Part shown: one piece after another, positions 20,227-64,000 of the stretch | Numbering within the stretch: position 1 is the stretch's first letter | Layout: each line of letters opens with the position of its first letter | From: Diadema antillarum | Lineage: Eukaryota | Direction of reading: 5' to 3' | Assembly: GCF_040938485.1 (NCBI RefSeq) | Contig: NW_027272210.1 | Span: forward strand, 310,001 to 374,000 | Length of the DNA: 64,000 nucleotides | Notes under the pieces: generated by a model | Database searches by the model: none | Told to the model about the DNA's origin: nothing | The model's input: only the letters and a program-made list of their open reading frames with translations | Position numbers and translations under genes: made by a program

Positions 20227-20240
20227 CTGGAGGGAGACAA

Positions 20241-20600
20241 TAGATAGATAGATAGATAAATAAATAAATAGATAGAAAGATAGATACATGGATGGATAAA
20301 TGGAGAGATAGATGGATGGATGGATTGATGGATGGATGAATAGATAAAAAATAGATAGATAGATAGATAGAGATAGATAGATAGAAACATATAGATAGAT
20401 ACAGTGTAGGTGAATGTACAGATGGATGGATGGAAGGAAGGATAGATAGACAGATAGAAAGATACTGTAGATACATAGATATATTGATACTTGCAGATGT
20501 AGACAGATTGATACTTGCAGATGTAGACAGAAAGATAGATAGATGTATGGATGGACAGACAAAGAAAGACAGAGATGGAAAGACAGATAACAGGTAAATA
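20241..20600. repeat. Compound (GATA)n/(GGAT)n microsatellite
   Basis: Direct reading. It explains the spurious Y/L/S/I-rich ORFs at 20071-20624. Confidence 0.95.
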
Positions 20601-23600
20601 GGATACCGACAGATTATGGCACACTATGAATACATGGATTTCTTTTTTGTATGTGTAATGTAGATACTTACTGCATTTTGGGATAATTTAAGAACAATTA
20701 GAGTATGGCAAAGGTTACAATCAGTGTTAGAATATCTGGTCAAAATCATTCATCTGGAATGCATCAATACCATATAAGTACCAGAACAGGCAACTAGTGA
20801 TACAGAAAGAAAAAAAAAATAGAGGCACTGGAAATACCCTGAAGTTGAAACATGGTAACATAGCCTTGATAAAATCTAAAAGCATGTATGCACAAACATT
20901 CAGATAAAAAACAACACCTGTGAATCAGAAAGCACATGTGTCATATGGTGTCATACTAATGTCAAATACATACAAATGGCTTCAAAATGTGTAATCAAGT
21001 ACAAGGGGATATGGAATACTCCCACTCTATATCTAAATCTTCTATTTATACATCCAATCATATCAACTGACATTTTTTAGTGTAATGCTCAAAATAAATG
21101 CAAAAAAACAACAACAACAAAACCAAGTGCTCCAGAAGGAAAAGAAGAGAGAGACAAAGAGAGAGCAAGATCACACCCTGGAGTTTCAGTACAAAATCAA
21201 AGGATGACAAAATTTTCCACAAAACTTACAGATAACACCATCTGCCTCCCGCGGCTACACGCAGGTAACTGCAAAATTATATACCAGTGCACTCAAATGT
21301 TTGGCCCAGGTGTCACTAGGGCTCTGTTGTCCCCGCCTGCTCCTGAAATGTGGAAGTAGATTCACAATCGATACCCTATTCCCTAGGGGGAAGTGCATAC
21401 ATACGTTACACAATCACATTCCTTGAGGAGCAAACACCTGGAAAGTTATAAAGTGACACCTAGCCAAGGAGCTGAAAGCCTTCCATCCTAACCACAAGGA
21501 GATATAAGGTGACACTTGAGAATTGACGTCACATCTTCCAGCAGACAAAGCAGCACATCACAATGTGAAGTGACCTGATCAATGCAGGAAAGGACAAAAA
21601 GAAATATATTGCAGCCAATTTTCTCCCTTCTTGTTCAATCAGGGAGTTACCCCATTGCCTGTTGTCACTTCTGGAGCCCTTTTGTACCGAAAATATATGT
21701 CTGGGTAGGTGATGAGCCAATTTTGGTTGAATCAATCAATACTTCTTCTTGAGTCCTTCTTGTTTTGTTGCATTTACCCCTAAGTCTCTTTCAAATCACT
21801 AAATAAGGATGTCTGAATACATGTTTATGAGATCTGAGTTTGTGACAGCTACTTTGTGGCTTGGAACAAGAGTCCATCCAATTCAAAAAGTGTGGGGATC
21901 TAGTCTCACTTAAAGTCAGAGGTCTCTGTTAGTGAGTATTACACTAGTGTACGTTAATATATGCTTCTGTATATTGACACTTTGTTTCAAAATCCACAGC
22001 ATCTTTTTCATCACTTGGAGCAATGCAGTCAAGACTAGTCCTCAAGATGCCCTCCCTAAATTCAAACAGTAAACGGTAAACTTCTTTCTCAACTGACTCG
22101 CAAAAACAATTTTGTCATGTACATGACAAGCACACAGTGACAAATTTGTCTGCTTGTAATATAACAAGACGTATAGTAATCCCAATCCAAAGTGACACTG
22201 CCCATGAGTCCTCTTGAATACCGTAACGACAAGTGTTCAACGCAGAGGGCGACACACGCATGACAATGAATCGTGTATTCATGAAAATTCAGCTGAAGGG
22301 GGCAGAATCGTTTTCTACTCCTCAGTTATCACACACCGTGCTGCTGTTCATAAGGAGACAGTCAGGCGGTGAGTTCTAACATTTAGTGTCGCTTGCCTCC
22401 AGAAATTTGAATGCATTTTGCCTCAAACTGTCCGGCATCATTGTTTTACACCATCGCAGAAAAAAAAATCTGCAGTCATAGTGTCTACGATGCAATTTCT
22501 TGTGGCGGGTGATCAAAGCTATGAAATAAACAATCTAAAGAACTTTTACATCAAAGTCTACACTGGGAGAATGTTATTCTGACAACAAGAGGAACAATGC
22601 TAATGCATTAAACATGCAAGCCATCATTTAGCTAATGATGACCTACTATTTTGCGAGCACAACATCGATTGTTATCAGAGGCAGGGAGAAGAGAATCGAA
22701 CTCTTAAAAGATAATTGTGACCGACATGATAAAAGAGCCTCCAGAGGTCACAACTTAATATATATCCAATGCAGAAGGACGTATCAGCACCAGGAACAAT
22801 GACGGAGAGGAGGAGTCCCATCCATGAATTGACTTCCAGAGAGCAATTTTCGGATTTAGATGCTTATCCATTATGTCAAATAAAAGATCATTTTCATCTG
22901 AAAGGGCATGTTGGATACAGAGAGGTGAAGAGGCATAGCACGGGGCCGTCCCTAGATGAGCAGGAAACAAGAAGGAAACAAGAAGGATATCGTGGTTCGA
23001 CTCAAATGGAATGATGATACAACAGTTCTTGTATCATGTACACTGTCACGTGGAAGAAAGTCATTGAATGAGGCAACAAAGGACAAAAGAAAAAAAGAGA
23101 TAAAAGGCAACAAGGGATATCTGCAAAGCAGATTAGGAGAGCTCTTCACCATGCTCTTGGTCAGATATGTTTAAACAAATTTACAAGAAGTATTAAAGGA
23201 AATACAAAAATACTGCAAAATATAAAGTCATAGACAACTGAGAAATTCATACACTAGGAGACTATATTCACAACAGAAGTAACTAGACAGGATGGTGAGA
23301 GCTTTGGACTAATGGTAAGTTGTAGTACTATCACACCTGTTGATGGAACACACAAACTTTACAACATAAACCAAAAGTTGCTTTGTCATCAAAATATTCT
23401 GGCTATGGGCCAGCTTAAAAATCTTTCTTCAGCTTCAGAGTAGCAGAATTCATGGTATTGTCATCATTCCTGAACATCCATGTTATGGGACTGGTTGGTT
23501 TGAAGGAAGCTACAGAGTTTTTTTGCAGAGACCACAAAGAGAGAGCGCAGTAAATCTACAATGTACCTGGTACATCTGTGCTTGAGCTTTTGCCATACTA

Positions 23601-24365
23601 TCTTGTCTTGAACACTGCTCAAAATAGCATTACCAAGTTCTTAATGCATGGTGGATAACATGGGATGAACATTGCCTATACGGGTACAATGAGCCTATTG
23701 ACATGCCTTTGTCAGGCCAAAGCTCTTTCTTTCTTTCCTTCCTTCACTCCCCTTTCACGACTATTGATCACGTTTTCACGCCTAGGGCCACAGCAGACAA
23801 ATCATAAAATGAGTTACAAATATAACTGGATCAATACAAGTTTGGCCTCTAAACTATGCTGCACTGTCAGCAAGAAAAATAGATATGTTCCTGCATTTGT
23901 GTTCAAAACATGTTTTAATGAACTCATTGTACAGCCTGGAATAAATGGGTTAAAACACAGTGTCTTTTCAGTAAATAATCCACAACAAAACTATGCAAGT
24001 AACTCATAAAGAGAACATTTATTCTATGGTCCTTTCCTTGATTAGTTTTGAGCTTTTCATATGTGGAAAATCTTACTGAGTTTTGTGGTATCCTCACTAT
24101 GAAAGAATCTTCAATGGACAGTTCTTTGTCTGTGAGTGGCCTCGACAAGCATAGCAATCAATTTTGACCAATATCTTTCATACAGAACACAGACATTTTT
24201 TTTTTCTTCCTTTAACATCACAGCAACAGTTCCGACTATAAAGTGTAGTGCCTTCATAGTTTTCACTTTTTGGTTGACCTCACTGTACTCACCTGCTGCC
24301 TGACAAAGCTTTCAGGGTTTACAGCAATATCAATTCTGAAACAATGTTATACAGTATAGTCTTAA

Positions 24366-25518
24366 CTCTTAACGTGCCATGGTCGCCGAACGGCGACCTT
24401 AGTCCTGACGTGCCATGGTCGCCGATCGGCGACTAAGAACAGCGAGTAAAGCATTGATCATTAAAGTTCTTGTGGTACCGTAATGTGTTACACCAAGCAA
24501 CTGCCAATGATATGCACTGGTAGCTGATTAGCATAGCCATCGTTTCCACTAAAAATATGAGCATGCTTACATTGGAAAATTTTGAGTAAATACACGATTT
24601 TTCAGCTAGATGTATTTTTCTTACATCGGGAAAATCCGCAGCGGGCGCAACCTCTGCGAGATGTGTATGGATCAAAAGTCTCATAGGTAAACCACGCGTG
24701 TGTATGCTATTGACTCTGCGTGTATTGTCTATGCGGTTCCACTCGCATTGTTCCGCTTGGACGCTGTCCTGCGGGAAGCTGCTTTGATTTTGTCCCTCAA
24801 AGAGAGTCAGCTTTCGTTCGTCGGTCAAGTCTTTCATCCTTTTGTTTTGGTGAACGTCACTAATCATCCCCACGCTAGCATAGGAATTGCGCGTGGACAA
24901 AGGCCTGCCGATTTCAATAGAGTACGCCCGCCCGCGGTCCGTGTAGACAAAAGGAGGATTAGCAGGTTCTTCCTTCTCAGGTGGACAAAAGACACTATTC
25001 CAGGGCCCGGGACAATTACTTTAGTTTCAAATACAGGATCTGGGACTAAAGGACTCAGATTTGGGAATGAATTACTTAGGCAGAAAGAGAAATTGCCAAG
25101 ACAAAATAAACTGCTAGTATCTTTGGAATCATACAATTCTAGAAGGCAATTTTGTTATCATTTGAAAGAGGAAATGTTGCTCTAAAACATTCTCACAGAG
25201 TCAAGGGAGCGTTCCATTGAAGAAAAAACAAGACTGACTCTTTTTTTCCATACTACACAAAAATTTCTAATGATGTTTTTGATGTATCAAATATTTCTGC
25301 AATATTTCAGATTCAGATAGATATTGTGGCAAACTGACTGCATGACAAGAAAGAGCAAACATTTCTTGATATATATTGTGTAGAACTCAATTCAAAACAG
25401 TCAATAGTTTCAGAGATATGGCGGTTTTAAATTTCACTGTCAGTCCAGTCTCGAAACCTTCTGGCGTTAGGTAAAAACCTCTGGCACGTTAGGGGTTTTG
25501 GGCCTGGCACATTAAGAG
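24366..25518. mobile_element. piggyBac-type non-autonomous element (1153 bp)
   Basis: TTAA at both ends (24362-24365, 25519-25522). TIRs ctcttaacgtgcca / tggcacattaagag (1 mismatch). Subterminal direct repeats on both sides. No transposase ORF recognised. Confidence 0.8.
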
Positions 25519-26309
25519 TTAATGTAGACAATGAAATTGATGTGAGAACAATGACTTTGATATTGAGCAATAAAAGTGTTATAATGAAATGCGAAGCTTT
25601 ACCTTGACAGTTTTGTCCTGTGAGATACTGTAGATCCTGTTCTCGTTTGGTGCTATGAAGAGGGAGAAGATTGGAGCGTTGTGTCCTCTCAGCATACCAG
25701 TCGGCTTGCTGTCGAGAGCAATTCAACAACAACAAAAAAGAAAACACTTTTAATCCCCATACTGTCTCTAATGATGAGAAATAAGAAATTGTTGACGCAT
25801 TTCATTTCAGAAAACAAGGGAAATATACAATTGAAATCAGTAAAAAACAAAAACAATCTTAAGGAATATAGGAGCAAAAGGGTTGTACATGTTTTAAAAA
25901 GTACAAGAGTTTTTTGCTTGCTTGAATTCATATGAAGAAGAGGAATATTTTTGAAATTAATTAAGAATATTTCTTAGTTTCAATACAAGTTTGTAATACT
26001 GCATCTAAGTACAATGTACAAGGAACTAAAGCTAAGACTTTATCATAGAGAAAGTCTACAACCTTTATAATTGGGAGTTACATTTAGGTAGTTTCTCTTT
26101 TTTGGATCAAGTGATGAAGAATGGTTTATTGTGTGATAATAGAAAGAAAAACACATTTGTACACACATATACACAAACACATTATACACACACATATGAA
26201 TTATAGATGGCAAGTTACATGTCTTTAGTTTACATGACCCTTCTTTGTATCTTGGCTAAGCCATATTACAAACCCTGGTAATAACGGCTGACTTCAAACA
26301 ACACACTCG

Positions 26310-26800
26310 GATGCTACAGTTTAGGACATTCTGTGTTGATGGAATGTCAATACCTATGGAGCATTCTTACCTTACTAACGAAGAATCTTCCCCTTCTCAC
26401 TACACACAAATTGGTGCTTGCCCTAGCACTCTTCCAAGATGTTACATAAAGCAAAGTGTGTGGCACAAAACTCAGAAGTACAACTGTACATGTGCCTACT
26501 CTGTCACTGACTTCGCAAGGGTATTTTGCAAAAGTGACACTTCAGTACAACTCACTGTGAGGCAAATATCAGGTGCGCTCGAGTAGATTAAAATGCACAA
26601 TCCTTTAATAACGGTAGGGGATAGGTTCTCTGTCTAATGAAAGCCTTTCAGGATTATCAGCGGTGTAATTCCATGTGGGTCTGCCCTTTTGAGGAGGCAT
26701 TTTATTGTCGCCACACAGATTACTAAGTCTCAAGGGCCTTTTGTAGATTAAACTGATTACTGATACCTCTACTCCTAACTTATATTGTTTGCCTTTATGT
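26310..26800 (+). mobile_element. Degenerate non-LTR retrotransposon RT-region fragment
   Basis: Frameshifted peptides GACPSTL..Y, KYNCTCAYS and RQISGA resemble the WGA..TLL.LYK...LDYG..YGS...LR.ATGA segment of I/Jockey-group LINE reverse transcriptases (recalled consensus). Confidence 0.4.
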
Positions 26801-29512: not shown

Positions 29513-32291
29513 ATGCATACCCTAGTTTGCGCTGCACTCTACCTCTTCACATTTCTATGGATAGGAGGCATATTTTCATCAGAACTGATCGGAACAAGAA
29601 AGCAACATGTGCTCAGCGAAGATCACTGTTGTCTCAGTAACAGTGGAGAAGGTATTTGTGCTGATTGCACAAGACGAAACTTGACAACAGTTCCTGGGGA
29701 CCTTCCAAATGACACTGTCATTTTGAATCTATCACACAACTGGATATCAGAACTTTTCCATAATTCCTTTCATGGTCATGGAAATCTTCTAAGGCTAAAT
29801 GTGGCATATAACCGGCTCATCCAAATTGAAAATGGCACATTCTCCTCTCTTGAACATCTTCAAGTACTGAATTTATCATACAACAGGTTAACTGAATTTC
29901 AAGGTGGATGGTTTCATGCAAAAATCAATCTTGAAACTCTTCCTCTCACAAAGACGAATTTGACTTCAACGCCCAGTGCAGCCTTTGCAGGGTCACCAAA
30001 GCTGACACAACTTACTCTTTCAGCGAACAGGATACAGTCTCTCCATTTTGATCCTTTATCTAGATGGGACAATATATCCATCGATTTGTCGCAAAACAAT
30101 CTGTCATCTATCCAACAGCATGACTTTCTACCTCTGAAGAATTGTTTATTGTCATCTTTAGTCCTGAGCAGAAACAAGCGGCTTCACCTTCTAGGACCTA
30201 TGGTATTCTCTGGACTTCCTTTTGTCAGCAGCATTTTGCTCCATGGGATTAACATTACAAAGCTTGAGGTCCTGGCATTCATGGGCAAAGCATATATCAC
30301 TGAGTTATCTCTACAAAACTCTTCAATTAAGGAAATAATCCCTGTTAATTCATCAGCATACAATTTCAGTTTTCCAAACATCGAGATCATAGATTTGACA
30401 GACAATTTTATTCAGAAAATTCCTGAGTTTGCATTTTGGGGACTGAATTGGACGCAAACTCTCATTATACAGAGAAAATAAAGTTTTCAGTATCCAAAAC
30501 ACATCTTTCTGTTCACTAGATGATTTGCAGGTTCTTGACCTATCACATAATCAAATCATATTTCTGCCAGATTTTGCCTTTCACTGCAATAAACATCTCC
30601 TTGAACTGCTGCTATCTTACAACAAGATAATGAGACTACATTCTACTTCTTTTAAGGGATTGAGTTCATTACTCCATCTGAACCTGTCTTACAACTCATT
30701 AGAAAACAGTCTAGACAAGTTCACTTTTATGCCATCCCTTGTCAATCTTGACCTTTGCTGCAACAAAATGACAAGACTAACAAAAAATCTATTCAGGAAA
30801 CTTTCTCATTTGCAGTATCTTAACATGTCTAACAATGATATTGAATCTGACATTAATTCAGCTTTTGCCAGCACACGGAAGATGAAAGAACTGATTCTTT
30901 CATATGAGAAAAATCTGCATCTACATGAAGACTTTTGCACCTTGGACAAACTGCAAAAACTGAATCTATCCCATTCACCTCTGACTATGAATTCAACAGA
31001 TCAATTTCGTGGTACTGCATCCCTCATAATGCTTGACATGAGCTTCACCAACCTGCAAAGTATGCATCTGTTTGACATTTCCAAACGATCTTCCTTGTTC
31101 TTGGGCCTGAAATCTTTGGAACGACTCTTCTTGCGAGGCAACAACTTCTTAAACAAATTGAAACCTGGTACATTTGATCCACTGACTAAACTCAAGGTAT
31201 TGGATATTTCTAATTCTAAAATTACAGTTGTCAGAGCAAAACTGTTCAACAGCCTGACTCTTCTATCAAGTTTACGTCTGCATGGCAACCAACTCATAGA
31301 ATTGAACACACAAACACTTTGTGGCCTGCAACAACTTCATTCTCTTTTTGTTCAAAGCAATTTCATACAGTCTATTCCAGTCACACTGTTCAACAGCACA
31401 CCTAATCTTTCAAAAATATTTATGTCACAGAATCATGTGAGTACTGTGCTTCCAGGCACAGTATTCCCCAGAAATGTGGAAATTGATTTGTCAAAAAATC
31501 CAATTATCTGCTCCTGTGAGTTGACATGGTTCAGAACTCTGCTGGACACAAATAACATTGCACTTATACATGCTAACAAGACTGTTTGTGAAAGGACATC
31601 CACGATGGGTACTGCCAACAAACCCCTTCTGCAGTTTCATCCTGAGGAGCTTTGCATTGTGAGTCCTGTCGTGACAATTGTGACATCTCTGGTACTCATA
31701 GCACTGTCACTCCTCTGTGTGCTTGTTTATCGCAAGCGATGGTGGCTGAGGAACAAGGTCTGCCTCATGAAAATGGCCATTCGCGGATATGAGGACCTTG
31801 AGGAGCACAATGCCGACAACTACCAATACCAGCTCAATGTCATGTTCAACGATGCTGATGCAGAATGGATCAATGGCACCATGAAGCCTGCTATGGAAGA
31901 GAGGTTTCCATACTTCACAAACATTCTGTGGGCTGACAACTATCTAAATGCTGGCATGCACTACGTGGATGCCCTATACAATGCCATGGAAATCAGCTAC
32001 AAGACCCTTCTCGTGCTAAGTAACCAATCAGTGGCAGACACATGGTTCATGTCCAAGGTGCGGATGGCTCTGGAACACCTTAATGAGACCAGATTGGACA
32101 GAGTCACACTGATTTTCCTTGAGGAAATCTCTGACGATCAACTCCCCTATCTGGTACGACTTCTCCTGAATGCCAACAGAGCTACCCTGATGTGGGCTAA
32201 GAATACAGACAGGCAAGATTTGTTCTGGGAGCAATTTCGGCACAGGCTTGTACGAGAGGAATTCAATTACATACCAATTGAATCATGCTAA
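29513..32291 (+). pseudogene. TLR: Toll-like receptor (TLR-A), single-cysteine-cluster LRR-TM-TIR type, disrupted by one 1-bp insertion at about 30470
   Basis: ORFs 29513-30481 and 30525-32291 join into a 925-aa TLR collinear with TLR-B if one C is removed (A: ATA C AGA GAA AAT AAA; B: ATA AGG GAA AAT AAA). Signal peptide, LRRNT, about 24 LRRs, LRRCT (NPIICSCEL), TM and TIR are all present. The lesion could be a base-calling error. Confidence 0.85.
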
Positions 32292-36845: not shown

Positions 36846-38615
36846 TAAAAGAAAAAGTTAATGTCAAAGCCTTGATATAGGTATCTTGCAGAAAACTTTA
36901 TTTTCTATTCATTATGGGAATTCAGTCAACAATATGCAAGATACGCCCCCCCAAAAAAAAAAATAAAGGATGCAAAAAGCACTACACCATCATTTTGCAT
37001 CACAACTCTTATTAAAAAACAACAACAAGGAATGCAGTGATTTTGAAGGGGAAATAAAAAACAAGCATATCCCAATATATATCAGATCATTTTATTACCT
37101 GTGAGCACAAAAAAAAAAATTCATGATAATTTCTAGCCCTCACTGAGAGGAAACAGAGTATTGAACACAGCAATATCACTATACGAGAGCTGTTGCATAG
37201 CCTTCTTTCATATGGTGATTGTGGTGCAACCATGCACTTATTAAAGTGAAACCAATCTCAAACGGCACAACATTATTGTTGCTGATCTGTACAGATGGAA
37301 CTAGATGAGAGGGCATAATATATCTTTTTAATATCTTTCCACAGAATTGATTAATCTTACAATTAAAATGTGTCAACCAATGTCTTTCCCTCTCCCTCTC
37401 TCTCTCTCTCAAAAAAAGTGATGGATGGTTTCGAGCCTACAAAATTTATGTTTTTAAACCACTCACAGAGATGCCAGCTTCTTGACATTAAAACAAAACA
37501 AAACAAAGAAACAAAACAAAACAGATGGGACATCCTTAAAAAAAAAATCAGATTTTTGAGAGGAAATCAGATTTTCATGAAATCTTGATACCACCACTAG
37601 CCCATTGGCTCTGGACCAGTAAAATGTCAGAAAAAAAAAATCCCTGGTACAAACAGGCAAGTAAATTGTACTACTTTATCATTAGATGAGAAAATTTTAA
37701 AGCATCCACATACCTCCCGCCCATCTAGGCTCATCGTTCAACATTTTTGTAGAGGTTGCAGGAAGTTAGTAGTACATATTTCTATGTGATAAGCAGTTTT
37801 CCGTGGTTTATATTGGCTTCATTTTCATCTCTTTTTTTGCATTCAAAAGATGAAAAGTTGTACTTTCAAGAATATCGTGTTATCATATTTCACTCTCTTT
37901 ATCGTACTTATACCACAGAATTGTATTGGATGGTGTCTCTGCACTCATCACATTTCATATACTCAGAAATAATCATTGCTACTGTTAGTAACATAATCAC
38001 AATGCAGGCCTAAACTGTGGAAAGGAAGCCTACATTGATCACAAATGAACAAAACTACTAGTAAAGTAAAAGTGCATGCATAACCACACACAATTCTCAT
38101 ATAACAGTCCAATCACATGCAAGATATAAAACACAGGAAGCAGCCCGTCCCCACTTTTTATATGATGTTTCTGTTTTCAAAGCTGACAGGCATATATGCA
38201 GAGCATGTCACAAATCACTGCAGTCACTACAGTCACCAGGAAGAGAATTTGTTAGACTCTTTTCACATACCACACACACAGGATATTCTCTACTTGCTAC
38301 GGCTCTTTCGACAAAGGACTTTTCGTTATCTCGATCGACATGCACTGATGTTGGTTCAAAATTTTGCTTGCCGAGATCACAAGAAATTGGTGCATCAACT
38401 ATCCTGGTCAATTATAGAAGAGGAAGACACTTAAATCTCTCACTTATTCTTCTCAGTGCATAGTGTCTGTCAACACTTTGGGCAGTAACTACCTTTGATG
38501 ACCAGTTCTATCTTTGTAAAGATTAAGTGTCTCACCACTCATTCTGGGAGTATAATGACACTCGCCAAGCTCTGAGGTGATTCTTAATGCGCTGATGACT
38601 ACATAGGAGCCCACA

Positions 38616-41390
38616 ATGCATACCCAGGCTTGCGCTGCCCTCTACCTCTTCACGTTTCTATGGATACGAGGCATATTTTCATCAGAACTGATCAGAACAA
38701 GAAAACTGGTGCTCAGCGAAGATCATTGTTGTCTCAGTGACAGTAGTGAAGGTACTCGTGCTGACTGCACAAAACAAAACTTGACAGAAGTTCCTGGGGA
38801 CCTTCCAAACGATACTTTCATTTTGAATCTATCACATAACTGGATATCAGAACTTCTCCACAATTCCTTTCATGGCCATGGAAATCTTCTCAAGCTAAAT
38901 GTGGCATATAACCGGCTCATCCGCATTGAAAATGGCACCTTCACCTGGCTTGAACATCTTCAAGTACTGATCTTATCGCACAACAAGTTAACTGGATTTC
39001 AAAATGGACTGTTTCATGCTAATATCAACCTTAAAACTCTGATTCTTATAAAGAACAATTTTACTTCAATGCCAAGTGCAGCCATTGCAGAGTTACCAAA
39101 GCTGACAACATTTACAATCTCAGCAAACTGGATACAGTCTCTCCACTTCGATCCATTGTCTAGATGGGATGATATATCTATTGATTTGTCAGGAAACAAC
39201 CTATCATCTATCCACAAGGAAGACTTTTTACCTCTCAAGAAATGTTCATTGTCACATTTAGTTTTGAGTGGGAACAAGTGGCTTCACCTAGAGCCAATGG
39301 TATTCTCTGAACTTCCTTTTGTCAGAAGCATTTTGCTCCGAGGAAACAGCATTAAAAGTCTTGAGGTATTGGCATTCATGGGCACAGCAAATATCACAGT
39401 GTTATCCTTGTATGGCTCTTCCATCAAGGAAATAATTCCTGTGAATGTGTCAGCACATGACTTCAACTTTCCCAACATCAAGATTGTAGATTTGGCATCC
39501 AATCTTATTCAGAAAATTCCTGAGTTTGCATTTTTGGGACTGAATTGGACGCAAACTCTCATTATAAGGGAAAATAAAGTTTTCAGTATCCAAAATACAT
39601 CTTTCTGTTCACTAGATGATTTGCAGGTTCTTGACCTATCACACAATCAAATCATATTTCTGCCAGATGGTGCCTTTCACTGCAATGAACATCTTCTTCG
39701 ACTCCTGCTATCTTACAACAAGATAATGAGACTACATTCTGCTTCTTTTGAGGGGTTGAGTTCATTACTCCATCTCAACCTGTCTTACAACTCATTAGAA
39801 AACAGTCGAGACAAGTTCACTTCTATGACATCACTTGTCAATCTTGACCTTTGCTCCAACAAAATGACACGAATAACAAAAAGTCTATTGGGGGGATTGT
39901 CCCATTTGCAATACCTTAATATTTCTTACAATGATATTAACTCTGAATTTACTTCAGCATTTGCCAGCACACGGCAGATGAAAGAACTGATTCTTACATA
40001 TGAGAAAAATCTACAAATACATGAAGATTTTCGTACCTTGGACAAACTGCAAAAACTGGATCTATCCCATTCACCTTTGCAAATGAATTCAACAGATCAA
40101 TTTAGTGGTACTGCATCCCTCACAATGCTTGACATGAGCTTCACCAACCTGCAAAGTACGCATCTGTTCAATAGTTCCAAACGATCTTCCCTGTTCTTGG
40201 GCCTAAAATCTTTGGAGCAACTCTTCTTGCAAGGAAACTATTTTCTAAACAAAATAGAGCCTGGTACATTTGATCCACTAACTAAACTCAAGATATTAGA
40301 TATTTCCAATTCTAGAATTACAGCTGTTGAAGCAAAACTGTTTGAGAGTCTGACTCTTCTATCAAGTTTGCGTTTGCATGGCAACCAACTCATAAAATTG
40401 CACACACAAACACTCAGTGGTTTGCAACGACTTAATTCTGTTTTTGTTCAAGACAATTTGATACAATCTATTCCAGTCACACTGTTCAACAGCACACCTA
40501 ATCTTTCAAAAATATTTATGTCACAGAATCATGTGAGTACTGTGCTTCCAGGCACAGTATTCCCCAGAAATGTGGAAATTGATCTGTCCAAAAATCCAAT
40601 TCTCTGCTCCTGTGAGTTGGCATGGTTCAGAACTCTGCTGGACACCGATAACATTGCACTTATGCATGCTAACAAGACTGTTTGTGAAAGGACATCCACG
40701 ATGGGTGCTGCCAACAAACCCCTCCTGCAGTTTCATCCTAAGGAGCTTTGCACTGTGAGTCTGGCCATGCCTATTGTGACAACATTTCTGGTACTCATAG
40801 TACTATCACTCCTCTGTGTGCTTGCTTATCGCAAGCGATGGTGGCTGAGGAACAAGGTCTGCCTCATGAAAATGGCCATTCGTGGATATGAGGACCTTGA
40901 GGAGCACAATGCCGACAACTACCAATACCAGCTCAATGTCATGTTCAATGATGCTGATGCGGAATGGATCAATGGCACCATGAAGCCTGCTATGGAAGAG
41001 AGGTTTCCATACTTCACAAACATTCTGTGGGCTGACAACTATCTGAATGCTGGCATGCACTACGTGGACGCCCTATACAATGCCATGGAAATCAGCTACA
41101 AGACCCTTCTCGTGCTAAGCAACGAGTCAGTGGCAGACACATGGTTCATGTCCAAGGTGCGTATGGCTCTGGAACACCTTAATGAGACCAGATTGGACAG
41201 AGTCACACTCATTTTCCTTGAGGAAATCTCCGACGATCAACTCCCCTATCTGGTACGGCTTCTCCTGAATGCCAACAGAGCTACCTTGATGTGGGCTAAG
41301 AATACAGACAGGCAAGATTTGTTCTGGGAGCAATTTCGACACAAGCTCATACGAGAGGAATTCAATTACATACCAATTGAATCATGCTGA
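38616..41390 (+). CDS. TLR: Toll-like receptor (TLR-B), 924 aa, uninterrupted coding exon
   Basis: Signal peptide; LRRNT (CCLSDSSEGTRADCTKQNLTEVP); about 24 LxxLxLxxN repeats; LRRCT (NPILCSCELAWF...CERTS...C); hydrophobic TM followed by YRKRWW; TIR domain (YQYQLNVMF...LFWEQF). Confidence 0.96.
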   Translation: MHTQACAALYLFTFLWIRGIFSSELIRTRKLVLSEDHCCLSDSSEGTRADCTKQNLTEVPGDLPNDTFILNLSHNWISELLHNSFHGHGNLLKLNVAYNRLIRIENGTFTWLEHLQVLILSHNKLTGFQNGLFHANINLKTLILIKNNFTSMPSAAIAELPKLTTFTISANWIQSLHFDPLSRWDDISIDLSGNNLSSIHKEDFLPLKKCSLSHLVLSGNKWLHLEPMVFSELPFVRSILLRGNSIKSLEVLAFMGTANITVLSLYGSSIKEIIPVNVSAHDFNFPNIKIVDLASNLIQKIPEFAFLGLNWTQTLIIRENKVFSIQNTSFCSLDDLQVLDLSHNQIIFLPDGAFHCNEHLLRLLLSYNKIMRLHSASFEGLSSLLHLNLSYNSLENSRDKFTSMTSLVNLDLCSNKMTRITKSLLGGLSHLQYLNISYNDINSEFTSAFASTRQMKELILTYEKNLQIHEDFRTLDKLQKLDLSHSPLQMNSTDQFSGTASLTMLDMSFTNLQSTHLFNSSKRSSLFLGLKSLEQLFLQGNYFLNKIEPGTFDPLTKLKILDISNSRITAVEAKLFESLTLLSSLRLHGNQLIKLHTQTLSGLQRLNSVFVQDNLIQSIPVTLFNSTPNLSKIFMSQNHVSTVLPGTVFPRNVEIDLSKNPILCSCELAWFRTLLDTDNIALMHANKTVCERTSTMGAANKPLLQFHPKELCTVSLAMPIVTTFLVLIVLSLLCVLAYRKRWWLRNKVCLMKMAIRGYEDLEEHNADNYQYQLNVMFNDADAEWINGTMKPAMEERFPYFTNILWADNYLNAGMHYVDALYNAMEISYKTLLVLSNESVADTWFMSKVRMALEHLNETRLDRVTLIFLEEISDDQLPYLVRLLLNANRATLMWAKNTDRQDLFWEQFRHKLIREEFNYIPIESC

Positions 41391-48346: not shown

Positions 48347-51142
48347 ATGACTGCCGTAAGGATGCACTCCTCAATGTGTGCTCTGTGCTGCATTCTACTG
48401 ATGCTGTGGGTGGTATTCCTACTGTCGATGTCAGCTGCCTCCCCACCAAACCAGACGATGTCTCTACAATGCAACTGCTGCTCCTATAATGAGACCAGCC
48501 GAGGCATCAAGGTCTACTGCAATCATTGCCATCTGAAGTCAGTTCCCCAAGACCTCCCGAACAGGACTATCACTTTAGATTTATCATACAACCTTATAAC
48601 ACAACTTCAAAATTACTCCTTTGCATCCCTCTGGAATCTAATCACCTTAAATTTGAGGAAGAATGCAATCTTTCATATTGAAAATGCTGCTTTCACACCT
48701 CTCATTCATCTCAAGATATTATCTCTTTCAGGAAATAAGTTGGCACAAGTTCATCCTGGGCTTTTACGTTCTAATAAGAATCTCTATCGTGTAGATTTAG
48801 GCGGTAATTTGTTTACTTCTGTGCCTTTAACTGCAATTAAAGACTTATCAAAGCTAAAGGCTATAATCTTAATGAAAAATTCAATACAATCATTTGACTT
48901 TCAGTCAGTCTCAGGGTGGAAGAGAATATCTGAAATAAACTTGTCAAGGAATGATATCAAATCCATTCCTCATCATGCTTTTTTTCCACTACAAAACAAC
49001 TCCATGCACGCTTTAGACCTCAGTCATAACAAAATCACTGCAGTGACAACTGGTGTATTCTCAGACCTTGCGACTGTTAATCTTGTTTCCTTTGATGTTA
49101 ATCATATTAACAAATTTGAGGTGCTCGCATTTATGGGTAACTTAAAGATTAAGAAACTGTCACTATATGGCACTTTGCTGCAGGAAATAATTCCACTTAA
49201 CAGGTCTGTACGTGATGAAGTTGCCATTCCTCACATACTGAAAATTGAGTTGAGTGGCAACAGAATCGTTGATGTCCCTCATTATGCATTTTGGGGTTTC
49301 TATCACACAGTAAGTCTTAGCATACAGAAGAACAGGATCACAAATATTGCAAACACATCTTTTTGTGGGCTCCATTCATTGCAGAGCCTGGAAATATCTG
49401 AAAATCACATTTCTTCTCTCCCACTGGGTGCATTTCACTGCAATGAAAACCTCCTCAATTTGAACATTTCCCACAATGAGATCATCATGTTGGATCCTGG
49501 CTCCTTCATGCAGCTGCCTAAGATACAACACCTTGATCTCTCCAATAACCTGATTCTCTCCTTCACATACAAAACCTGGACCACGGAAACTCTGCTCACT
49601 CTAGACATTTCTTTCAACAGTCTAGATAAACTTCCTAATGGTGTGTTATGGGGACTAAAAAATCTCAAAGTTCTAAATGTGTCTCACAACAAAATTGGAG
49701 GATATTCTCCATTTGCATTTGCACGAACACCTCATCTGCAGGAGCTGTATCTGACCTCAGAAGTCGCCTCTCTGTTAAGTGAAGTTTTCCGTGATATGAC
49801 AAATCTAAAAATACTGGATCTGTCATACACAAAACTTACACTGAATTCAACTTATCAGTTTACTGGAGCTGTATCACTGCAAGAACTAAGCTTAAGTTTT
49901 AACAATTTGGATAGCAAAAGTTTGTTTAATTACAAAACAAACCATTCTTTGTTTGCTGGTCAAGCAGTGCTTCAGGGGCTTTACCTGCAGGGAAATTCCT
50001 TGAACAACTTGGAACCTGGCACCTTCAGTTCACTGGGAAACCTATCATCATTGGATCTCTCTGACTCTGAGATCAATATACTGAAACCAGGACTGTTTCA
50101 AAATTTGACTTCCCTTACAACATTGTATCTCAGGGGAAACCAAATTCAAGAGCCATCTGCGGATGCCCTGTATGGTCTCCACAGTCTCAAAACTCTTTTC
50201 TTCGAAAAGAGTTCAGTCAGGTCTTTGCCACTCACACTGTTCAATGACACACCTCATCTTATCAGACTATTTCTGTCTGAGAATCACCTCAGCACCATAT
50301 TTCCTGGTACATTATTTCCTACCACTATACACTTAGATTTATCACAAAACCCACTCTCATGCACATGCGATTTAGCATGGTTCAGAAAGTGGGTTGAGCT
50401 AAGCAATGTTGTCCTAGTGCAACAGAATAACACGATTTGCTCAAGATCATCCTTTGAAACTTTAGTCAATCATCCTTTTTTACTCTTTAATTCAGAAGAA
50501 TTCTGCAGCTTAAATGTGACTCTTATAGTATCAGTTTCCTTGGTCCTTGTCATTGTGGGATATGTGGCTATAGCTGTATACTACAGACGTTGGTGGTTTC
50601 GCTACCGGCTCTATCTCCTGAAGCTAGCCATCTTGGGATATGAGGAAGTGGAAGACAATCAACAACCAGAGGACTATAGGCACCAGCTTAACATCATGTT
50701 CTCTGATGGGGATGAAGAGTGGGTCAACAATGTCATGAGACCAGCCATGGAAGAAAGATTTCCTCGGTTTGAAAGCATTCTCTGGGGTGACGACTATCTT
50801 CACATTGGTATGTACTTAGTAGACGCTATCCATCATGCCCTGGAAAACAGCTTCAAGACTGCTCTAGTGATCAGCAACGAGTCGGTGGAGGAGCAATGGT
50901 TTATGACCAAGATTCGCTTGGCCTTAGAACATATCAATGAAACCAAATTGGACAAAGTTATTCTGATTTTCAAGGAGCATGTTGAAGACGACCAACTTCC
51001 CTATCTTGTACGGCTCTTCCTGAGCTCTAACAGACCGTACTTGGAATGGGAAGAAGATGAATACAGACAGGATTTGTTTTGGGCCAAGCTCGAGAAGAAC
51101 TTCAGATCAAATAAGGTGATAAATAATGCAATTCCTGTATAG
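48347..51142 (+). CDS. TLR: Toll-like receptor (TLR-C), 931 aa, uninterrupted coding exon
   Basis: Signal peptide; LRRNT (CNCCSYNETSRGIKVYCNHCHLKSVP); LRR array; LRRCT (NPLSCTCDLAWF); TM followed by YYRRWW; TIR domain (YRHQLNIMFSDGDEEWV...LFWAKL). Confidence 0.96.
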   Translation: MTAVRMHSSMCALCCILLMLWVVFLLSMSAASPPNQTMSLQCNCCSYNETSRGIKVYCNHCHLKSVPQDLPNRTITLDLSYNLITQLQNYSFASLWNLITLNLRKNAIFHIENAAFTPLIHLKILSLSGNKLAQVHPGLLRSNKNLYRVDLGGNLFTSVPLTAIKDLSKLKAIILMKNSIQSFDFQSVSGWKRISEINLSRNDIKSIPHHAFFPLQNNSMHALDLSHNKITAVTTGVFSDLATVNLVSFDVNHINKFEVLAFMGNLKIKKLSLYGTLLQEIIPLNRSVRDEVAIPHILKIELSGNRIVDVPHYAFWGFYHTVSLSIQKNRITNIANTSFCGLHSLQSLEISENHISSLPLGAFHCNENLLNLNISHNEIIMLDPGSFMQLPKIQHLDLSNNLILSFTYKTWTTETLLTLDISFNSLDKLPNGVLWGLKNLKVLNVSHNKIGGYSPFAFARTPHLQELYLTSEVASLLSEVFRDMTNLKILDLSYTKLTLNSTYQFTGAVSLQELSLSFNNLDSKSLFNYKTNHSLFAGQAVLQGLYLQGNSLNNLEPGTFSSLGNLSSLDLSDSEINILKPGLFQNLTSLTTLYLRGNQIQEPSADALYGLHSLKTLFFEKSSVRSLPLTLFNDTPHLIRLFLSENHLSTIFPGTLFPTTIHLDLSQNPLSCTCDLAWFRKWVELSNVVLVQQNNTICSRSSFETLVNHPFLLFNSEEFCSLNVTLIVSVSLVLVIVGYVAIAVYYRRWWFRYRLYLLKLAILGYEEVEDNQQPEDYRHQLNIMFSDGDEEWVNNVMRPAMEERFPRFESILWGDDYLHIGMYLVDAIHHALENSFKTALVISNESVEEQWFMTKIRLALEHINETKLDKVILIFKEHVEDDQLPYLVRLFLSSNRPYLEWEEDEYRQDLFWAKLEKNFRSNKVINNAIPV

Positions 51143-57697: not shown

Positions 57698-58022
57698 GGC
57701 ATAATTTACCATTTGTATCATAGATGACACACAAATCCAGCATTAGTGCTTTAGATAGTTCTAAAATGTGAGTTAGAAACAGAAACTACTGTAAAAAAAA
57801 AAAAAAAAATGAATTCGTATAATCGATGTTAAGTATTGTTAAGTGCACCAAATGTGAAAAATAGATTTAACAAAAATGTTTCCAGATCTCCTCATATTTT
57901 AGGCCTTATTGTAAAAATTTTATATGGTAGAATGTTATGTGATACAACAGACCTGCACATATGCATCAAATGTGAAATCATGAACATTTTTGAAATCACT
58001 GTTCCCAGAGGTAAACAGGACT
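57698..58022. mobile_element. TTAA-associated MITE; a related copy is nested at about 53511-54030
   Basis: Inserted into aaagcttaagacgtg (contiguous at about 45640). 57750-58000 is homologous to 53530-53990. Confidence 0.6.
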
Positions 58023-58435
58023 TATAAGACGTGCTGTTTTGTTGTTTTGTTTGTTTTGTTTTTTCGCGGGGTCATTTATGCAATTTAGGTGCATATGAAA
58101 TTAGTAATTATGCAAAAGTATTCTGCTCTTCCTATAGCTGCATGGCTAACAACCTATTGTTCCTGAAGCATCTACCACACTGTATGCAAAGGTTTATTTC
58201 ATTTTTGATAATGCACTACTGTAAAGCATGATATTTTCACGGCACGAAATTTTCGCAAATTGAAGCCTTCTTCGCGGCACTAAATATTCATGAGTTGCCT
58301 CTAACATTCAATATGTAAAGTGTAGACAAGAACTTTCATGTGCATTTTCACTCTGTACAAAGTGTCAGCTCCACTTGAAAATGTCTCAAGTTATGTACCT
58401 TCTTGGGTTGCATATTACATCAATGTCATATTAGT

Positions 58436-59639
58436 CAAGGATGCCAGTGGCAAATTGCTCTTGGGCCGGAAATTTTTTTTGTGAACGAAACTGATGTGCG
58501 CGAAGCGCACATCACGAGCGCGAAGCGCGAAGTCCCTTCGGCCGGGGTCCAGGGCCCGCTCAAGGGCCCTGGAAGCTCTGGGGTTCTTAGATGCTCTCTG
58601 GTGCAATCTGAGCATTTCTGAGGGCTCTTCTTTCCTCAAATCTAATCCAGAGAAATGAATTTGTAGCAAAAATAAAGAAGTCCTAGTGCCGTAAACTCCG
58701 TAGTTTTGCTTCGTTCAGCTGACTCGATCGACTCACCATACTCTCTCAGCGCTGTAGCTACAGCGAGAGGGCAGCATGATCCATGCACTGCAGTATACAT
58801 CGCCTAGAATTAGAAACACCACACGTTGTTCGATCGCGATCGCACGTGCTGGTATAACGCTTTCCAGACAATAATGTGGTCGTATTCTAGAAAAAAAAAA
58901 TTTGTAGCAAAAATAAAGAAGTCCTAGTGCCGTAAACTCCGTAGTTTTGCTTCGTTCAGCTGACTCGATCGACTCACCATACTCTCTCAGCGCTGTAGCT
59001 ACAGCGAGAGCGCAGCATGATCCATGCACTGCAGTATACATCGCCTAGAATTAGAAACACCACACGTTGTTCGATCGCGATCGCACGTGCTGGTATAACG
59101 CTTTCCAGACAATAATGTGGTCGTATTCTAGAAAAAAAAAATTTGTAGCAAAAATAAAGAAGTCCTAGTGCCGTAAAATCCATAGTTTTGCTTCGTTCAG
59201 CCGACTCAATCGACTCACCACACCGTCTCAGCGCTGTTGCTATAGCGAGAGCGCAGTATGATTCATGCACCGCGACCGCACATACTAGTAGTACATCGCA
59301 TAGAAACACCACACACTGTTCGATCGCTATCATCGCACGTGTTGCATGTCCCATGGCCCAGCTAGCAGCAGCAACATCGCGCTAGTTTTGCATGACAGTC
59401 GTTTTGTGATATTCTCATGCCCAAGTATATGTGAAACATACTACGGAAATCGTGAAAGTGAATGTCCCGTAAGTTTAGATGATCATATTTTTTCGTTTTT
59501 CTTTCTTTCTTTCTTTGTTTCTTTCTCGTGTTTTCCGGCTTTCCCACACAGACGGAAATAATATCATGAAGCCGGAAATTGGACACCAAAATATGAAAAA
59601 GCCGGAATTCCGGCTATTGCCAGAAAACTGGCATCCCTG
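58436..59639. mobile_element. 1.2-kb hAT-like non-autonomous element with an internal 241-bp tandem repeat
   Basis: TIRs caaggatgccag / ctggcatccctg; ATTAGT duplicated at 58430-58435 and 59640-59645; empty site at about 46125-46135 in unit C; repeat units start at 58660, 58901 and 59142. Confidence 0.78.
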
Positions 59640-61873
59640 ATTAGTGAAATTGATATTGGGCTATGCACCCTGCTCTGTGTGATGAATGAAGTGAGATCTT
59701 TTACCTGCATGAGTAGTGACTCTCTTACACATTGGATCTCCAGTTTATTGCATGTCTTATCCGAGGGACAGAGTGTTTTGTCTCTTATTCTCAATACACA
59801 AAACACTGCTCAGTAAGACTAAGCAATCAAACATTTGGCTGTGGTGGCAGACATGCTATAAACTGAGCCAACTCACCGCCCTGGATTTCAGTTGGGTAAT
59901 GACAAAAATGCAAATATTACCATAAAAGGTATGTCTGAAGTATTGCAATCTTGGATGACACCCAATGATGGTTGCTATGTGATTTATAAAAATCATTAGC
60001 ATTGATTAATAAATGGCCACAGCATAATCCATCATGCGAGAGGGTATTGCATGCTGCCTGTTTGCTGCAGGCAATGCAATACATTGTAGATGTACTACTG
60101 CTAGGGCATGATTCAATCATTATGTACTAGTAACAGTTGATACCTAGCCACTATTGAACTGGAAAGGCACTTCAGTAATAAAGTCATGTGCTACGATTGA
60201 AATTATTCCACACTTTTGATTTCAAAACGATCAAAATGATTGATTATCTTGGCAATCTATCACAGCTTTCTTGGTAGGTACTAGGTAGAAATTTTTGCAA
60301 GCATATTCAAAGTTTAAAATATGAATTTTGAGCCTGAAAATGCACTTGGTGGAGTCAAGTGATCTGCACATCCCTTCTTTAAATCATGTAGAACTATGAG
60401 ACTTTCCTCCTGATGGTATTCATGAAATTAAATCTCCATCAATAAAGCACAGGATTCGCAAAGTAATCTTTATTGAATACACATACCGGGTATTAGATAT
60501 CAAAGCTACAGTTTACAGCCCTGCCTCTACCAAAAACTGAAAGTCTCATAAATGATTTATTTGGCGAATGAATCTGCTCTGACTGCGCAATAACATTTCT
60601 GTGTTAGAGAACACATTCTAGAATTACACCTATGATTATTTCATACAATGACTACCTCCCCAGAGGAGACATAATAGTGAGACATGCAGTGTAACTTGTA
60701 GTCATGACAACGGACCATCAATCACGGACCTTACAAAAATATTATTGTCACTGTCAATTCCTGTGCGAGGTCATTGCAACTCGTGGCTTAATACCTGTTC
60801 CTGCACGCACAGCTACTTAACTTTAGAGCTTTCCATTTTGCATCTGGTAACTGGAACAAGCTTAAAGACATAAAAACAAACATGGTCCTATGCACTCATT
60901 CCTGTGGCACATTGTGTGAAGAATTTATACCATTTGCTGGCCATTGCTGATCACCTGCGGGTGTGATGAATTACAAGGGGTCTGGAACATCAGTCGTCTG
61001 TGTGTAGGGAGGGACCATTTTGAGTGTGCATCCTACTCCTTGCGAAGAGGAATGTGGTGGGATCTTCTGCATACATGAGTCAAGACTTCTTCTTGAATCA
61101 GACCTCCATTTCACATCTGGTCCAATTTAAGGACAGTGTTTTTGCCTCTCGCTAGACGGAAGGGTGCAGCGTGATGGCAGACAAAACTGCTCATACCAGT
61201 TCGACTCACATAGCGCAAAAACCTAAAGCTTCAATCTTTAGTGCAAGACAGACTGGGATACAGTGAACGAGAAAGCCACCTCATATTGCCCTTATGCATG
61301 GTGTCACAAGAGTGCAATCTGATCGACTTAAGCGAACTTTCTGTGAGTACAACACTTGTACACTTATTCTTTCAAGACTGAGATAAGGACATTTCAACCA
61401 TTGGGTCAGCATGTGATTGTTGGACTAGCTTAGTAATACTGGATACTGACAGTTAAGATATGAATATATCACAACATGATACTGTTCAAGAACTAGATGA
61501 CATTTTTGTACCTCACAACCAGCAATCTGAGCATATTACATAGGCCTAGATACTCTCTGCAAACATATTCCAGTCTTCTATCAGAGCAATCTTTCCTCAC
61601 TAATGAATATGCAGGTGTGCCAATAACTGCAAGAGGTCATTGCAAAATATGCTGCTGGGACTATATACTCATTGACATTTGAAATATATATGCACTCTAG
61701 AACTGGAAGCAGCTACATAGTGCTATTTGCAGTTCTGTGAATTCCTGCAGCAGCAATCTGATGATATTCCTGTAGACTGCATACATTCAACAGCTTGCTT
61801 TAATACCCAGCAGAGTTTGATAGTGCTGCCATATTTTTGCAGGAAGCTAAAGTAATACCATTTTGAGGGCACC

Positions 61874-64000
61874 ATGACTGCCGTAAGGATGCACTCCTCA
61901 ATATGTGCTCTGTGCTGCATTCTACTGATGCTGTGGGTGGTGTTCCTACTGTCGATGTCAGCTGCCTCCCCACCAAACCAGATGATGTCTCTCCAACGCA
62001 ACTGCTGCTCCTATGAAGAGACCAGCCGAGTCATCAAGGTCTACTGCAATCATTGCCATCTGAAGTCAGTTCCCCAAGACCTCCCAAACAGGACGATCAC
62101 TTTAGATTTATCATACAACCTTATAACGCAATTACAAAATTACTCCTTTGCACCCGTCTGGAATCTAGTCACCTTAAATTTGAAGAAAAATGCAATCTTT
62201 CATATTGAAAATGCTGCTTTCACACCTCTCATTCATCTCAAAATATTATCTCTTTCAGGAAATAAGTTGACACAAATTCAGCCTGGGTTACTATGTTCTA
62301 ATAAGAATCTCGGTCTCTTAGATTTAGGAAATAACTTGTTTACGTTTGTACCTGTAACTGCAATAAAAAACTTATCAAACTTAGAGACATTGATTCTAAT
62401 GAAAAATTCAATACAATCCTTTGATTTTCAGTCAGTTTCACGGTGGAAGAAAATATCTGAAATAAACTTGTCATTGAATAATATTATATCCATTCCTCAT
62501 CATGCTTTTCTGCCATTACAAAATAACTCCCTGCGCATTTTAGACCTCAAGTATAACAAAATAAATGAAGTGACACCTGGGGTATTCTCGGACCTCACAA
62601 CCGTTAATTCTCTTTTACTTGATGTTAATCATATTAACAAATTTGAAGTGCTAGCATTCATGGGCAGCTTAAAGATTAAGAAACTGACCCTAATTGGCAC
62701 TTTGCTAAAGGAGATAATTCCACTGAACAAGTCTACATGTGATACAGTTCCCATACCTCACATAATGAAAATTGAGTTGACTGGCAATGAAATAGTTGAA
62801 ATCCCTCACTATGCATTTTGTGGTTTTTATCACACTGTAAGTCTTTTGATACAGAAGAACAGGATCACAAATATTGCAAACACATCTTTTTGTGGACTTC
62901 ATTCATTGCAAATCCTGGACATATCTGAAAATCATATTTCTTCTCTGCCACTGGGTGCATTTCACTGCAATGAAAACCTCCTCCAGTTGAACATTTCCCA
63001 TAATAAAATTCTCATATTGCATCCTGGCTCCTTCATACAGCTGTCTATGATACAACACCTTGATCTATCTAATAACATGATTTTCTCCTGCAATTACAGA
63101 CTTTGGACCACTAAAACTCTGCTCACTTTAGACATCTCTTTCAATAGTTTAGATAAAATTCCTCACAGCATGTTAAGGGGACTCACAAATCTCAAAGTTC
63201 TAACTGTGTCTCACAACAAGATTAGAGGATATTCTCCTTTTTTATTTGCACACACACCAAATTTGCAAGAGTTGTATCTGATCTCAGAAGAAGCGTCTTA
63301 CCTGTGTGAAAATTTCCGTGACATGACTTACTTACAAATACTGGATCTGTCATATACAAAACTTGCATTGAATTCCACACATCAGTTTACTGGAGCCGAG
63401 TCACTGCAAAAACTTCATTTGCGTTTCAACAATTTAGGAAGTGAAAGTTTGTTTGATACCCAAACAAACCATTCCTTGTTTGCTGGTCAAGCAGTACTCC
63501 AGGGGCTGTACCTGCAGGGAAATTCCTTGAACAACATGGAACCTGGAACCTTCAGTTCACTGACAAGCCTGAAATCCTTGGATATCTCTGACTCTGAGAT
63601 CAAAGTACTGAAACCAGGACTATTTAACAATTTGACTTCCTTGACAACATTGTATCTAAGGGGTAACCCAATTAAAGAGCCATCTGCAAATACCCTGTAT
63701 GGTCTCCACAGTCTCAGAACTCTTTTCTTTGAAAAGAGTTCAGTTAGGTCTTTGCCAATCACACTGTTCAATGACACACCTCATCTTTTTAAACTATTTC
63801 TATCTGAGAATCACCTCAGCACCATATTTCCTGGTACATTATTTCCTACCACTATACACTTAGATTTATCACAAAACCCACTCTCATGCACATGCGATTT
63901 AGCATGGTTCAGAAAGTGGGTTGAGCTAAGCAATGTTGTCCTTATGCAATCAAATAAGACTGTTTGCTCAAGATCCTCTTTTGAAACTTTAGTCAATCAT
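61874..64000 (+). CDS. TLR: Toll-like receptor (TLR-D), 5' 709 codons, runs off the right edge
   Basis: It is missing from the ORF track because there is no stop inside the window. Manual translation from the ATG at 61874 is open through 64000 and collinear without indels with TLR-C codons 1-709 (offset 13527 bp), ending FETLVNH in the LRRCT. Confidence 0.93.
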   Translation, partial: MTAVRMHSSICALCCILLMLWVVFLLSMSAASPPNQMMSLQRNCCSYEETSRVIKVYCNHCHLKSVPQDLPNRTITLDLSYNLITQLQNYSFAPVWNLVTLNLKKNAIFHIENAAFTPLIHLKILSLSGNKLTQIQPGLLCSNKNLGLLDLGNNLFTFVPVTAIKNLSNLETLILMKNSIQSFDFQSVSRWKKISEINLSLNNIISIPHHAFLPLQNNSLRILDLKYNKINEVTPGVFSDLTTVNSLLLDVNHINKFEVLAFMGSLKIKKLTLIGTLLKEIIPLNKSTCDTVPIPHIMKIELTGNEIVEIPHYAFCGFYHTVSLLIQKNRITNIANTSFCGLHSLQILDISENHISSLPLGAFHCNENLLQLNISHNKILILHPGSFIQLSMIQHLDLSNNMIFSCNYRLWTTKTLLTLDISFNSLDKIPHSMLRGLTNLKVLTVSHNKIRGYSPFLFAHTPNLQELYLISEEASYLCENFRDMTYLQILDLSYTKLALNSTHQFTGAESLQKLHLRFNNLGSESLFDTQTNHSLFAGQAVLQGLYLQGNSLNNMEPGTFSSLTSLKSLDISDSEIKVLKPGLFNNLTSLTTLYLRGNPIKEPSANTLYGLHSLRTLFFEKSSVRSLPITLFNDTPHLFKLFLSENHLSTIFPGTLFPTTIHLDLSQNPLSCTCDLAWFRKWVELSNVVLMQSNKTVCSRSSFETLVNH

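Follow-up and report, generated by a model that had tools for sequence, protein, structure and literature searches.

Genes nested antisense within other genes are common in animals; about 6% of Drosophila melanogaster genes are intronic and 2mit, for instance, lies in intron 11 of Drosophila timeless2 (PMC3786989). The Toll-like receptor (TLR) arrays typical of sea urchins have been described as tandem, intronless and rich in pseudogenes (26% pseudogenes) and as subject to rapid birth and death, with expression in tissues of the immune system, phagocytes among them (Buckley and Rast, 2012; PMC3367398); the word 'nested' is absent from that paper, and the passages on introns that were covered are not about a host gene. 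No earlier report of TLR arrays nested in the introns of echinoderm genes was found by literature search. Here, a 64,000-nucleotide (nt) stretch of the Diadema antillarum genome (the window) was analysed with the 90 kb on its right, i.e. 154 kb in total. With a probability that we put at about 0.88, this DNA carries one functional CFAP337/WDR49-like gene with a tandem array of nine TLR genes nested antisense in its intron 11. The arrangement is a well-supported case, larger than previously thought, of the known 'gene within a gene' layout.

In common with 2mit/timeless2, autonomous genes of the opposite strand lie wholly in one intron of an unrelated host, whose coding sequence is intact. The guest differs in being a tandem array of nine or ten paralogues still changing in number, instead of a single gene; through it the intron, which measures 392 nt in a crinoid and 76 nt in Trichoplax, has swollen to 87,305 nt. 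With the sea-urchin TLR families of PMC3367398, the guests share the single-exon, vertebrate-like structure (leucine-rich repeats (LRR), one transmembrane segment and a TIR domain), the tandem layout and the presence of frameshifted members; they differ in that two subfamilies (43% identity) share one intron, and in that turnover can be seen directly by comparing the locus in its two copies, which are most likely haplotypes. The host gene, like those of the CFAP337/WDR49/WDY proteins, encodes an EF-hand region plus WD40 repeats and is collinear with them over its whole length; its protein is without unusual features, and intron 11 alone is unusual. CFAP337 of Tetrahymena is an axonemal WD40 protein located near the N-DRC (nexin-dynein regulatory complex), and it interacts with CCDC96 and touches the stem of inner-arm dynein d; its axonemal location and its dependence on CFAP57/CCDC96 are taken from that literature (bioRxiv 10.1101/2023.05.31.543107).

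The window corresponds to positions 310001-374000 (plus strand) of the 512-kb contig NW_027272210.1 (C1322) of a 1.75-Gb assembly. Coordinates above 64000 are window-equivalent (C1322 coordinate minus 310000). Homologues were retrieved by an exhaustive protein search with the atypical host exon at 17914-18074, a family-specific blade, as query. A canonical WD exon of the host matched generic WD40 proteins only, and solved-structure searches with three host exons returned generic WD40 proteins or no match, and did not name the family. Host exons were searched singly by tblastn and splice sites were picked by scoring the translations of two-exon junctions.

The host gene consists of 26 coding exons on the minus strand, with a total length of 3,351 nt or exactly 1,117 codons (family range 1,100-1,221 amino acids). 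It spans about 121 kb, from the ATG at window-equivalent 129566 to the stop codon at 8791-8789, and every one of the 26 has an open frame and canonical splice sites. An earlier annotation made from the letters of the window, without database searches (the sequence-only reading), had listed the 14 most downstream of these exons as in phase, with an intact stop; AG/GT borders and matching phases were recovered for all 14, from 20226 down to the stop after 8792. It was also right that the exon at 20075-20226 begins in mid-repeat (VWDTKDQV) after a good acceptor. It had found no further WD- or EF-hand-coding exon over the following 44 kb, but one WD-coding exon is present there. Among the minus-strand open frames upstream of 20226, a WD40-like frame was found at 25.6-25.7 kb, which is host exon 12 (25603-25708, 106 nt; acceptor AG at 25710-25709, donor GT at 25602-25601). 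This exon codes for 35 residues, the first ones of a WD40 repeat, and ends ...SQDKTVK, which joins in phase 0 to the VWD... of exon 13 and yields a complete canonical repeat. Six homologues match it in tblastn (best match 94% identity over 36 residues, E 2.7e-16) and Pfam WD40 is detected on this exon alone (E 2e-4). The interval 20227-25602 is an ordinary 5.4-kb host intron. In tblastn, five full-length homologues matched no other host exon at 25709-64000, and a crude WD-motif scan of the minus-strand frames of 25.7-64 kb turned up the 25.6-kb exon alone.

The other eleven exons, all N-terminal, were located by tblastn at window-equivalent 129566-113014 (C1322:423014-439566), 49-66 kb past the end of the window. 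The search with full-length homologues to the right of the window, which the sequence-only reading had proposed as a check, thus recovered N-terminal exons on the same contig and the same strand. When the N-terminal 270-505 residues of homologues were searched against the whole assembly, collinear matches were obtained at two places only, C1322:423013-433021 (minus strand) and C93:987436-1001155 (plus strand), the latter on a contig that holds a second copy of the locus. The missing exons had been predicted to lie beyond 64000, and this applies to 11 of the 12, with the remaining one at 25603-25708. Their presence within 20.3-29.5 kb had been named as evidence against nesting; one of the 12 is found there, in a trivial sense, and the eleven others are not.

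Between exons 11 and 12 lies intron 11, which extends on the minus strand from 25709 to window-equivalent 113013 (C1322:335709-423013), is 87,305 nt long, of phase 2 and contains no N; its part inside the window is 25709-64000. A giant intron of at least 44 kb beginning at 20227 had been proposed; the intron is indeed giant (87.3 kb), and its border lies at 25709 instead. At the donor (...GTTCCGAG/GTATAG), exon 11 ends ...GTT CCG AG, and at the acceptor (...CGACAG/C, at 25709/25708) exon 12 starts C AAG CCG ACT. The donor side leaves two nt and the acceptor side provides one, which gives ...NPYVPS-KPTGMLRGH..., as in all homologues, whose residues are contiguous across the junction (504 and 505 of P0053; 269 and 270 of P0017). 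Exon 11 (113014) and exon 12 (25708), which are consecutive in the host, completely enclose the guest genes (29513-110251). The central proposal of the sequence-only reading, that all four TLRs of the window are antisense inside one intron of a WD40 gene, is supported by these flanking collinear exons and contiguous homologue residues. The other 24 host introns, calculated from the exon coordinates, measure 259-5,519 nt.

Intron sizes were compared with Trichoplax and the crinoid Anneissia japonica. Both have an intron at the identical position and in phase 2, of 76 nt in Trichoplax and of 392 nt, without N, in the crinoid. Because position and phase are the same in both, intron 11 is ancient; its expansion from the 392 nt of the crinoid to 87,305 nt took place along the line of descent of this urchin. 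The next intron, after ...DKT(V/I)(K/R), is likewise common to Trichoplax. The Styela clava orthologue was uninformative on introns, as it is a single uninterrupted open frame of 3,528 nt (record OZ123524.1, piece positions 2001-5528). The urchin gene and that of Trichoplax have at least 25 introns, so the lack of introns in this CFAP337-like gene suggests either a retrogene or the loss of all introns.

Host exons, taken one by one, gave ordered tblastn matches to residues 12-1137 of homologue P0053, and also to P0024, P0062, P0017 and P0008. The source names of the collinear homologues are CFAP337-like, WDR49, WDR95 and WD repeat protein on Y chromosome. Host exon N3 scored 27.3 bits on Pfam EF-hand_1, above the cut-off of 25.4, a second EF-hand loop across exons N4/N5 was recognised by eye, and in P0053 itself EF-hand_7 was detected at residues 122-186. 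Single host exons also matched WD40, and these repeats may form the two beta-propellers of the family. By its homologues and domains, the host appears to be a CFAP337/WDR49-like gene with an N-terminal EF-hand region followed by WD40 repeats, and an axonemal role is predicted. The assignment to the WDR49/CFAP337 family in the sequence-only reading agrees with the names of the homologues and with the upstream EF-hand exon. Another pair of contigs (C967:685631-691377 and C460:1676397-1682150) carries a more distant paralogue, again with EF-hand and WD40, which is 40-56% identical to the host gene on two exons.

All nine TLR loci of intron 11 are intronless and on the plus strand, antisense to the host (29513-110251), and no TLR was found outside intron 11 within the 154 kb. 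The four plus-strand frames that had been reported in the window (29513-32288, broken near 30470; 38616-41390; 48347-51142; 61874 to the window end) are present. The view that the array is one of four genes proved too small, with nine TLRs on C1322 and ten on C93. Seven of the nine are intact (924-945 amino acids), and TLR-A and TLR-H are frame-broken on C1322. TLR-A (29513-32291) is a single exon in two overlapping frames with one extra base at 30470. TLR-B (38616-41390) is an intact single exon of 924 amino acids, and TLR-C (48347-51142), of the second subfamily, is intact with 931. TLR-D (61874-64000) is cut by the window end; it reaches window-equivalent 64669 and is also intact with 931 amino acids. 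The last TLR of the array occupies window-equivalent 107456-110251.

Two subfamilies were distinguished: subfamily 1 consists of TLR-A and TLR-B (89% nucleotide identity) and subfamily 2 of TLR-C to TLR-I (82-96%), and TLR-C and TLR-B share 43% of their amino acids. Pfam LRR_8 was detected on all five TLR frames of the window (E 5e-39 to 2e-84). The transmembrane segment and leader were judged by hydropathy (21-residue window): the seven intact TLRs have a segment with a hydropathy of 2.7-3.1 at about residues 716-745, plus a hydrophobic N-terminal leader. The TIR domains of the solved TLR1, TLR2, TLR6 and TLR10 structures align over their full length with the last 200 residues (E 1e-14 to 1e-8), and Pfam TIR_2 and TIR on the window TLRs remain below their curated cut-offs (23-25 bits vs 28). 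By domain content the guests appear to be TLRs of the vertebrate-like, single-cysteine-cluster type, with LRR, transmembrane and TIR parts; ligand-triggered signalling by way of TIR adaptors is predicted.

Each TLR lies in its own duplicon of 7-13 kb, and intra-intron repeats, spanning 28561-110297, make up 66% of intron 11. The local duplications had been said to have copied no host exon, and no such copy was detected inside intron 11 by tblastn and blastn. Pfam detected no domain in the other long open frames of intron 11 and its vicinity, at 24436-25182, 38065-38460, 41701-42180, 58977-59381 and window-equivalent 79235-79774. A local direct repeat (58658-59270, offset 241 nt; 58658-59029 vs 58899-59270 at 96.8%) was observed between TLR-C and TLR-D, under an unannotated frame of 135 amino acids.

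The second contig, C93, carries the same gene and layout, with an intron 11 of 90.7 kb and ten intact antisense TLRs. C93 and C1322 are most likely two haplotypes of one animal, because their non-coding divergence is 4-5% and paired matches occur throughout the assembly; the size of the assembly, which looks about twice that of a sea-urchin genome, points the same way. Seven TLR pairs match between the two copies at 97.8-100%. An A/B-type gene, b2, is present on C93 only, and each copy has one private C-I-type gene (E on C1322, g1 on C93). Both private genes are hybrids. TLR-E, in a sliding-window comparison, is 100% identical to F over its first 1.6 kb and 83-96% thereafter, and g1 matches the G-type gene at 98-100% in its first 1.2 kb and the F-type gene at 99-100% in its last kilobase. 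These differences in copy number and these hybrid genes point to ongoing unequal crossing-over or gene conversion between duplicons.

The last TLRs of the two arrays (window-equivalent 107456-110251; C93rc 103794-106559) are 84% identical, unlike most other positional pairs (98-100%), and C1322 and C93 seem to carry different paralogues at this position. The intact counterpart of TLR-A on C93 is 99.5% identical and is without the extra base at 30470; TLR-H has a two-base insertion at window-equivalent 100789-100790 relative to its C93 copy. The two frameshifts (TLR-A, +1 nt; TLR-H, +2 nt) occur on C1322 only and neither is inside a homopolymer run. Real null alleles and errors of assembly are both conceivable.

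Across the 24 host exons that were compared between C1322 and C93, 38 synonymous and 2 non-synonymous codon differences were counted, i.e. 20:0 upstream of the giant intron and 18:2 downstream. Exon divergence is 1.3-1.5% and that of the 150-nt flanks is 4.1-4.5%, on both sides of the giant intron. Because non-synonymous changes are so few and exon divergence is about one third of that of the flanks, both halves of the host gene are under purifying selection, and the gene is a functional one.

Three points weigh against a single transcription unit with a nested array. The splice from exon 11 to exon 12 across 87 kb is deduced from phase, conservation and constraint. The comparison of the intron covered a crinoid and Trichoplax only. 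In addition, the closest echinoid model available (P0001, XP_054754584.1, flagged LOW QUALITY at source) starts exactly at the equivalent of exon 12, which could mean a separate transcription start. That start may also be a model artefact, since the first residues of P0001 correspond in position to the acceptor region, read in frame, of the locus described here, and it fits a gene model broken at a very long intron. In P0001, the segment equal to host exons 12-18 is present twice in tandem (seven exons) and the whole N-terminal half is absent; the model has the look of an artefact of annotation or assembly at the corresponding locus of that species.

Alternatively, the growing array could have split the ancestral CFAP337 gene into two transcription units, an EF-hand/first-propeller gene ending near 113 kb and a second-propeller gene starting just upstream of 25708. 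Such a fission would agree with the start of P0001, which comes from another echinoid, at the exon equivalent to 25603-25708, with the in-frame ATG in exon 12 and with the plausible obstacle to transcription that an 87-kb intron full of antisense genes presents. Against this, the break would separate adjacent WD40 blades of one propeller region, exon 12 opens within a split codon, two bases of which have to come from an exon upstream, and no P0001-like first exon was found on the minus strand of the window by pattern search with up to 2 mismatches. P0001 itself, with its quality flag and its internal tandem duplication of seven exons, is a poor witness, and the two halves are under equally strong purifying selection and exactly compatible in phase; we regard fission as improbable.

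Another possibility is that the assembly is at fault, either because a foreign TLR array was mis-joined between the halves of the gene or because mis-assembled duplicons have given the array a wrong length. The TLR duplicons are 84-100% identical and such arrays are hard to assemble, and the two frameshifts occur on C1322 only. Yet the order of 5' exons, TLR array and 3' exons recurs on C1322 and C93, which were assembled separately and which have different TLR numbers and differences at 1-5% of their sites, and there is no N run anywhere in intron 11. The copy number of the array could be slightly off, which would leave the nesting unaffected; a wholly artefactual nesting is very improbable. 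It is less credible still that the host gene is a decaying relic around an array that took over the locus, a reading considered only for the extreme size of the intron. A relic would not be expected to retain 26 open exons out of 26, canonical splice sites and a frame-exact total length, nor 38 synonymous versus 2 non-synonymous differences and an exon divergence one third of that of its flanks.

The preferred reading, one functional gene with a nested antisense array, would work as follows. RNA polymerase would read the host gene through the whole antisense array, and the spliceosome would then connect the donor, C1322:423014, with the acceptor, position 25708 of the window (C1322:335708). 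Each duplicon presumably has its own TLR promoter; host and guest TLRs are probably expressed in different cells, so that collisions would be rare. The array would grow and be reshuffled by unequal crossing-over and gene conversion between duplicons. With all breakpoints within intron 11, its turnover would spare the host coding sequence. Beyond this locus, long introns of unrelated genes that are active in other tissues might be preferred nurseries for the TLR arrays of this sea urchin, which would then not have landed in introns by chance and whose antisense orientation would be selected; we consider this unlikely.

The remaining host exons of the window, all on the minus strand, are as follows; exons 12-26 were labelled E1 to E15, exon 12 being E1 and exon 13 (20075-20226) E2. 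Exon 14 (E3) lies at 19542-19644 and exon 15 (E4), with canonical WD40 repeats, at 18738-18924. The family-specific blade used as query is exon 16 (E5, 17914-18074). It is followed by exon 17 (E6, 16332-16494), exon 18 (E7, 15653-15745), exon 19 (E8, 15335-15393), exon 20 (E9, 14026-14104), exon 21 (E10, 13239-13310), exon 22 (E11, 12528-12567) and exon 23 (E12, 11771-11859). Exon 24 (E13, 10965-11218) encodes a conserved C-terminal non-WD segment and then an acidic tail, and exon 25 (E14) lies at 10088-10194. Exon 26 (E15, 8789-8942) holds the stop codon. A run of 141 N (9508-9648) lies inside the last host intron, between exons 25 and 26; no residue of the homologues is skipped at this point, so the run does not seem to hide an exon.

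Directly upstream of the exon 13 acceptor, a simple repeat rich in (TCTA/TCCA)n was observed at 20227-20620, which yields three long spurious open frames; similar repeats recur dozens of times across the genome (94 matches). The minus-strand frames 141-413 and 738-1004, which lie downstream of the host gene, resemble exons of a dCMP/cytidine deaminase. The former scored 19.6 bits on Pfam dCMP_cyt_deam_1, below the cut-off of 25, and the latter, by eye, is like the conserved N-terminal part of such a deaminase.

Prediction programs will probably break the host gene in two at intron 11, and the 1,117-codon model repairs this. The locus is a dated example of intron growth by duplication of resident genes, from 76 nt in the placozoan and 392 nt in the crinoid to 87-91 kb here. 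If long introns did serve as nurseries, unequal crossing-over would alter TLR number and make hybrid receptors at no cost in coding sequence, and read-through transcription of the host might silence or tune TLRs in ciliated or germ-line cells. A new principle would follow only if TLR arrays were shown to be biased, over the whole genome, towards antisense positions in introns. The locus is instructive for the turnover of immune multigene families, as its two copies display TLR birth, loss, frameshift alleles and hybrids beside a tightly constrained cilia gene.

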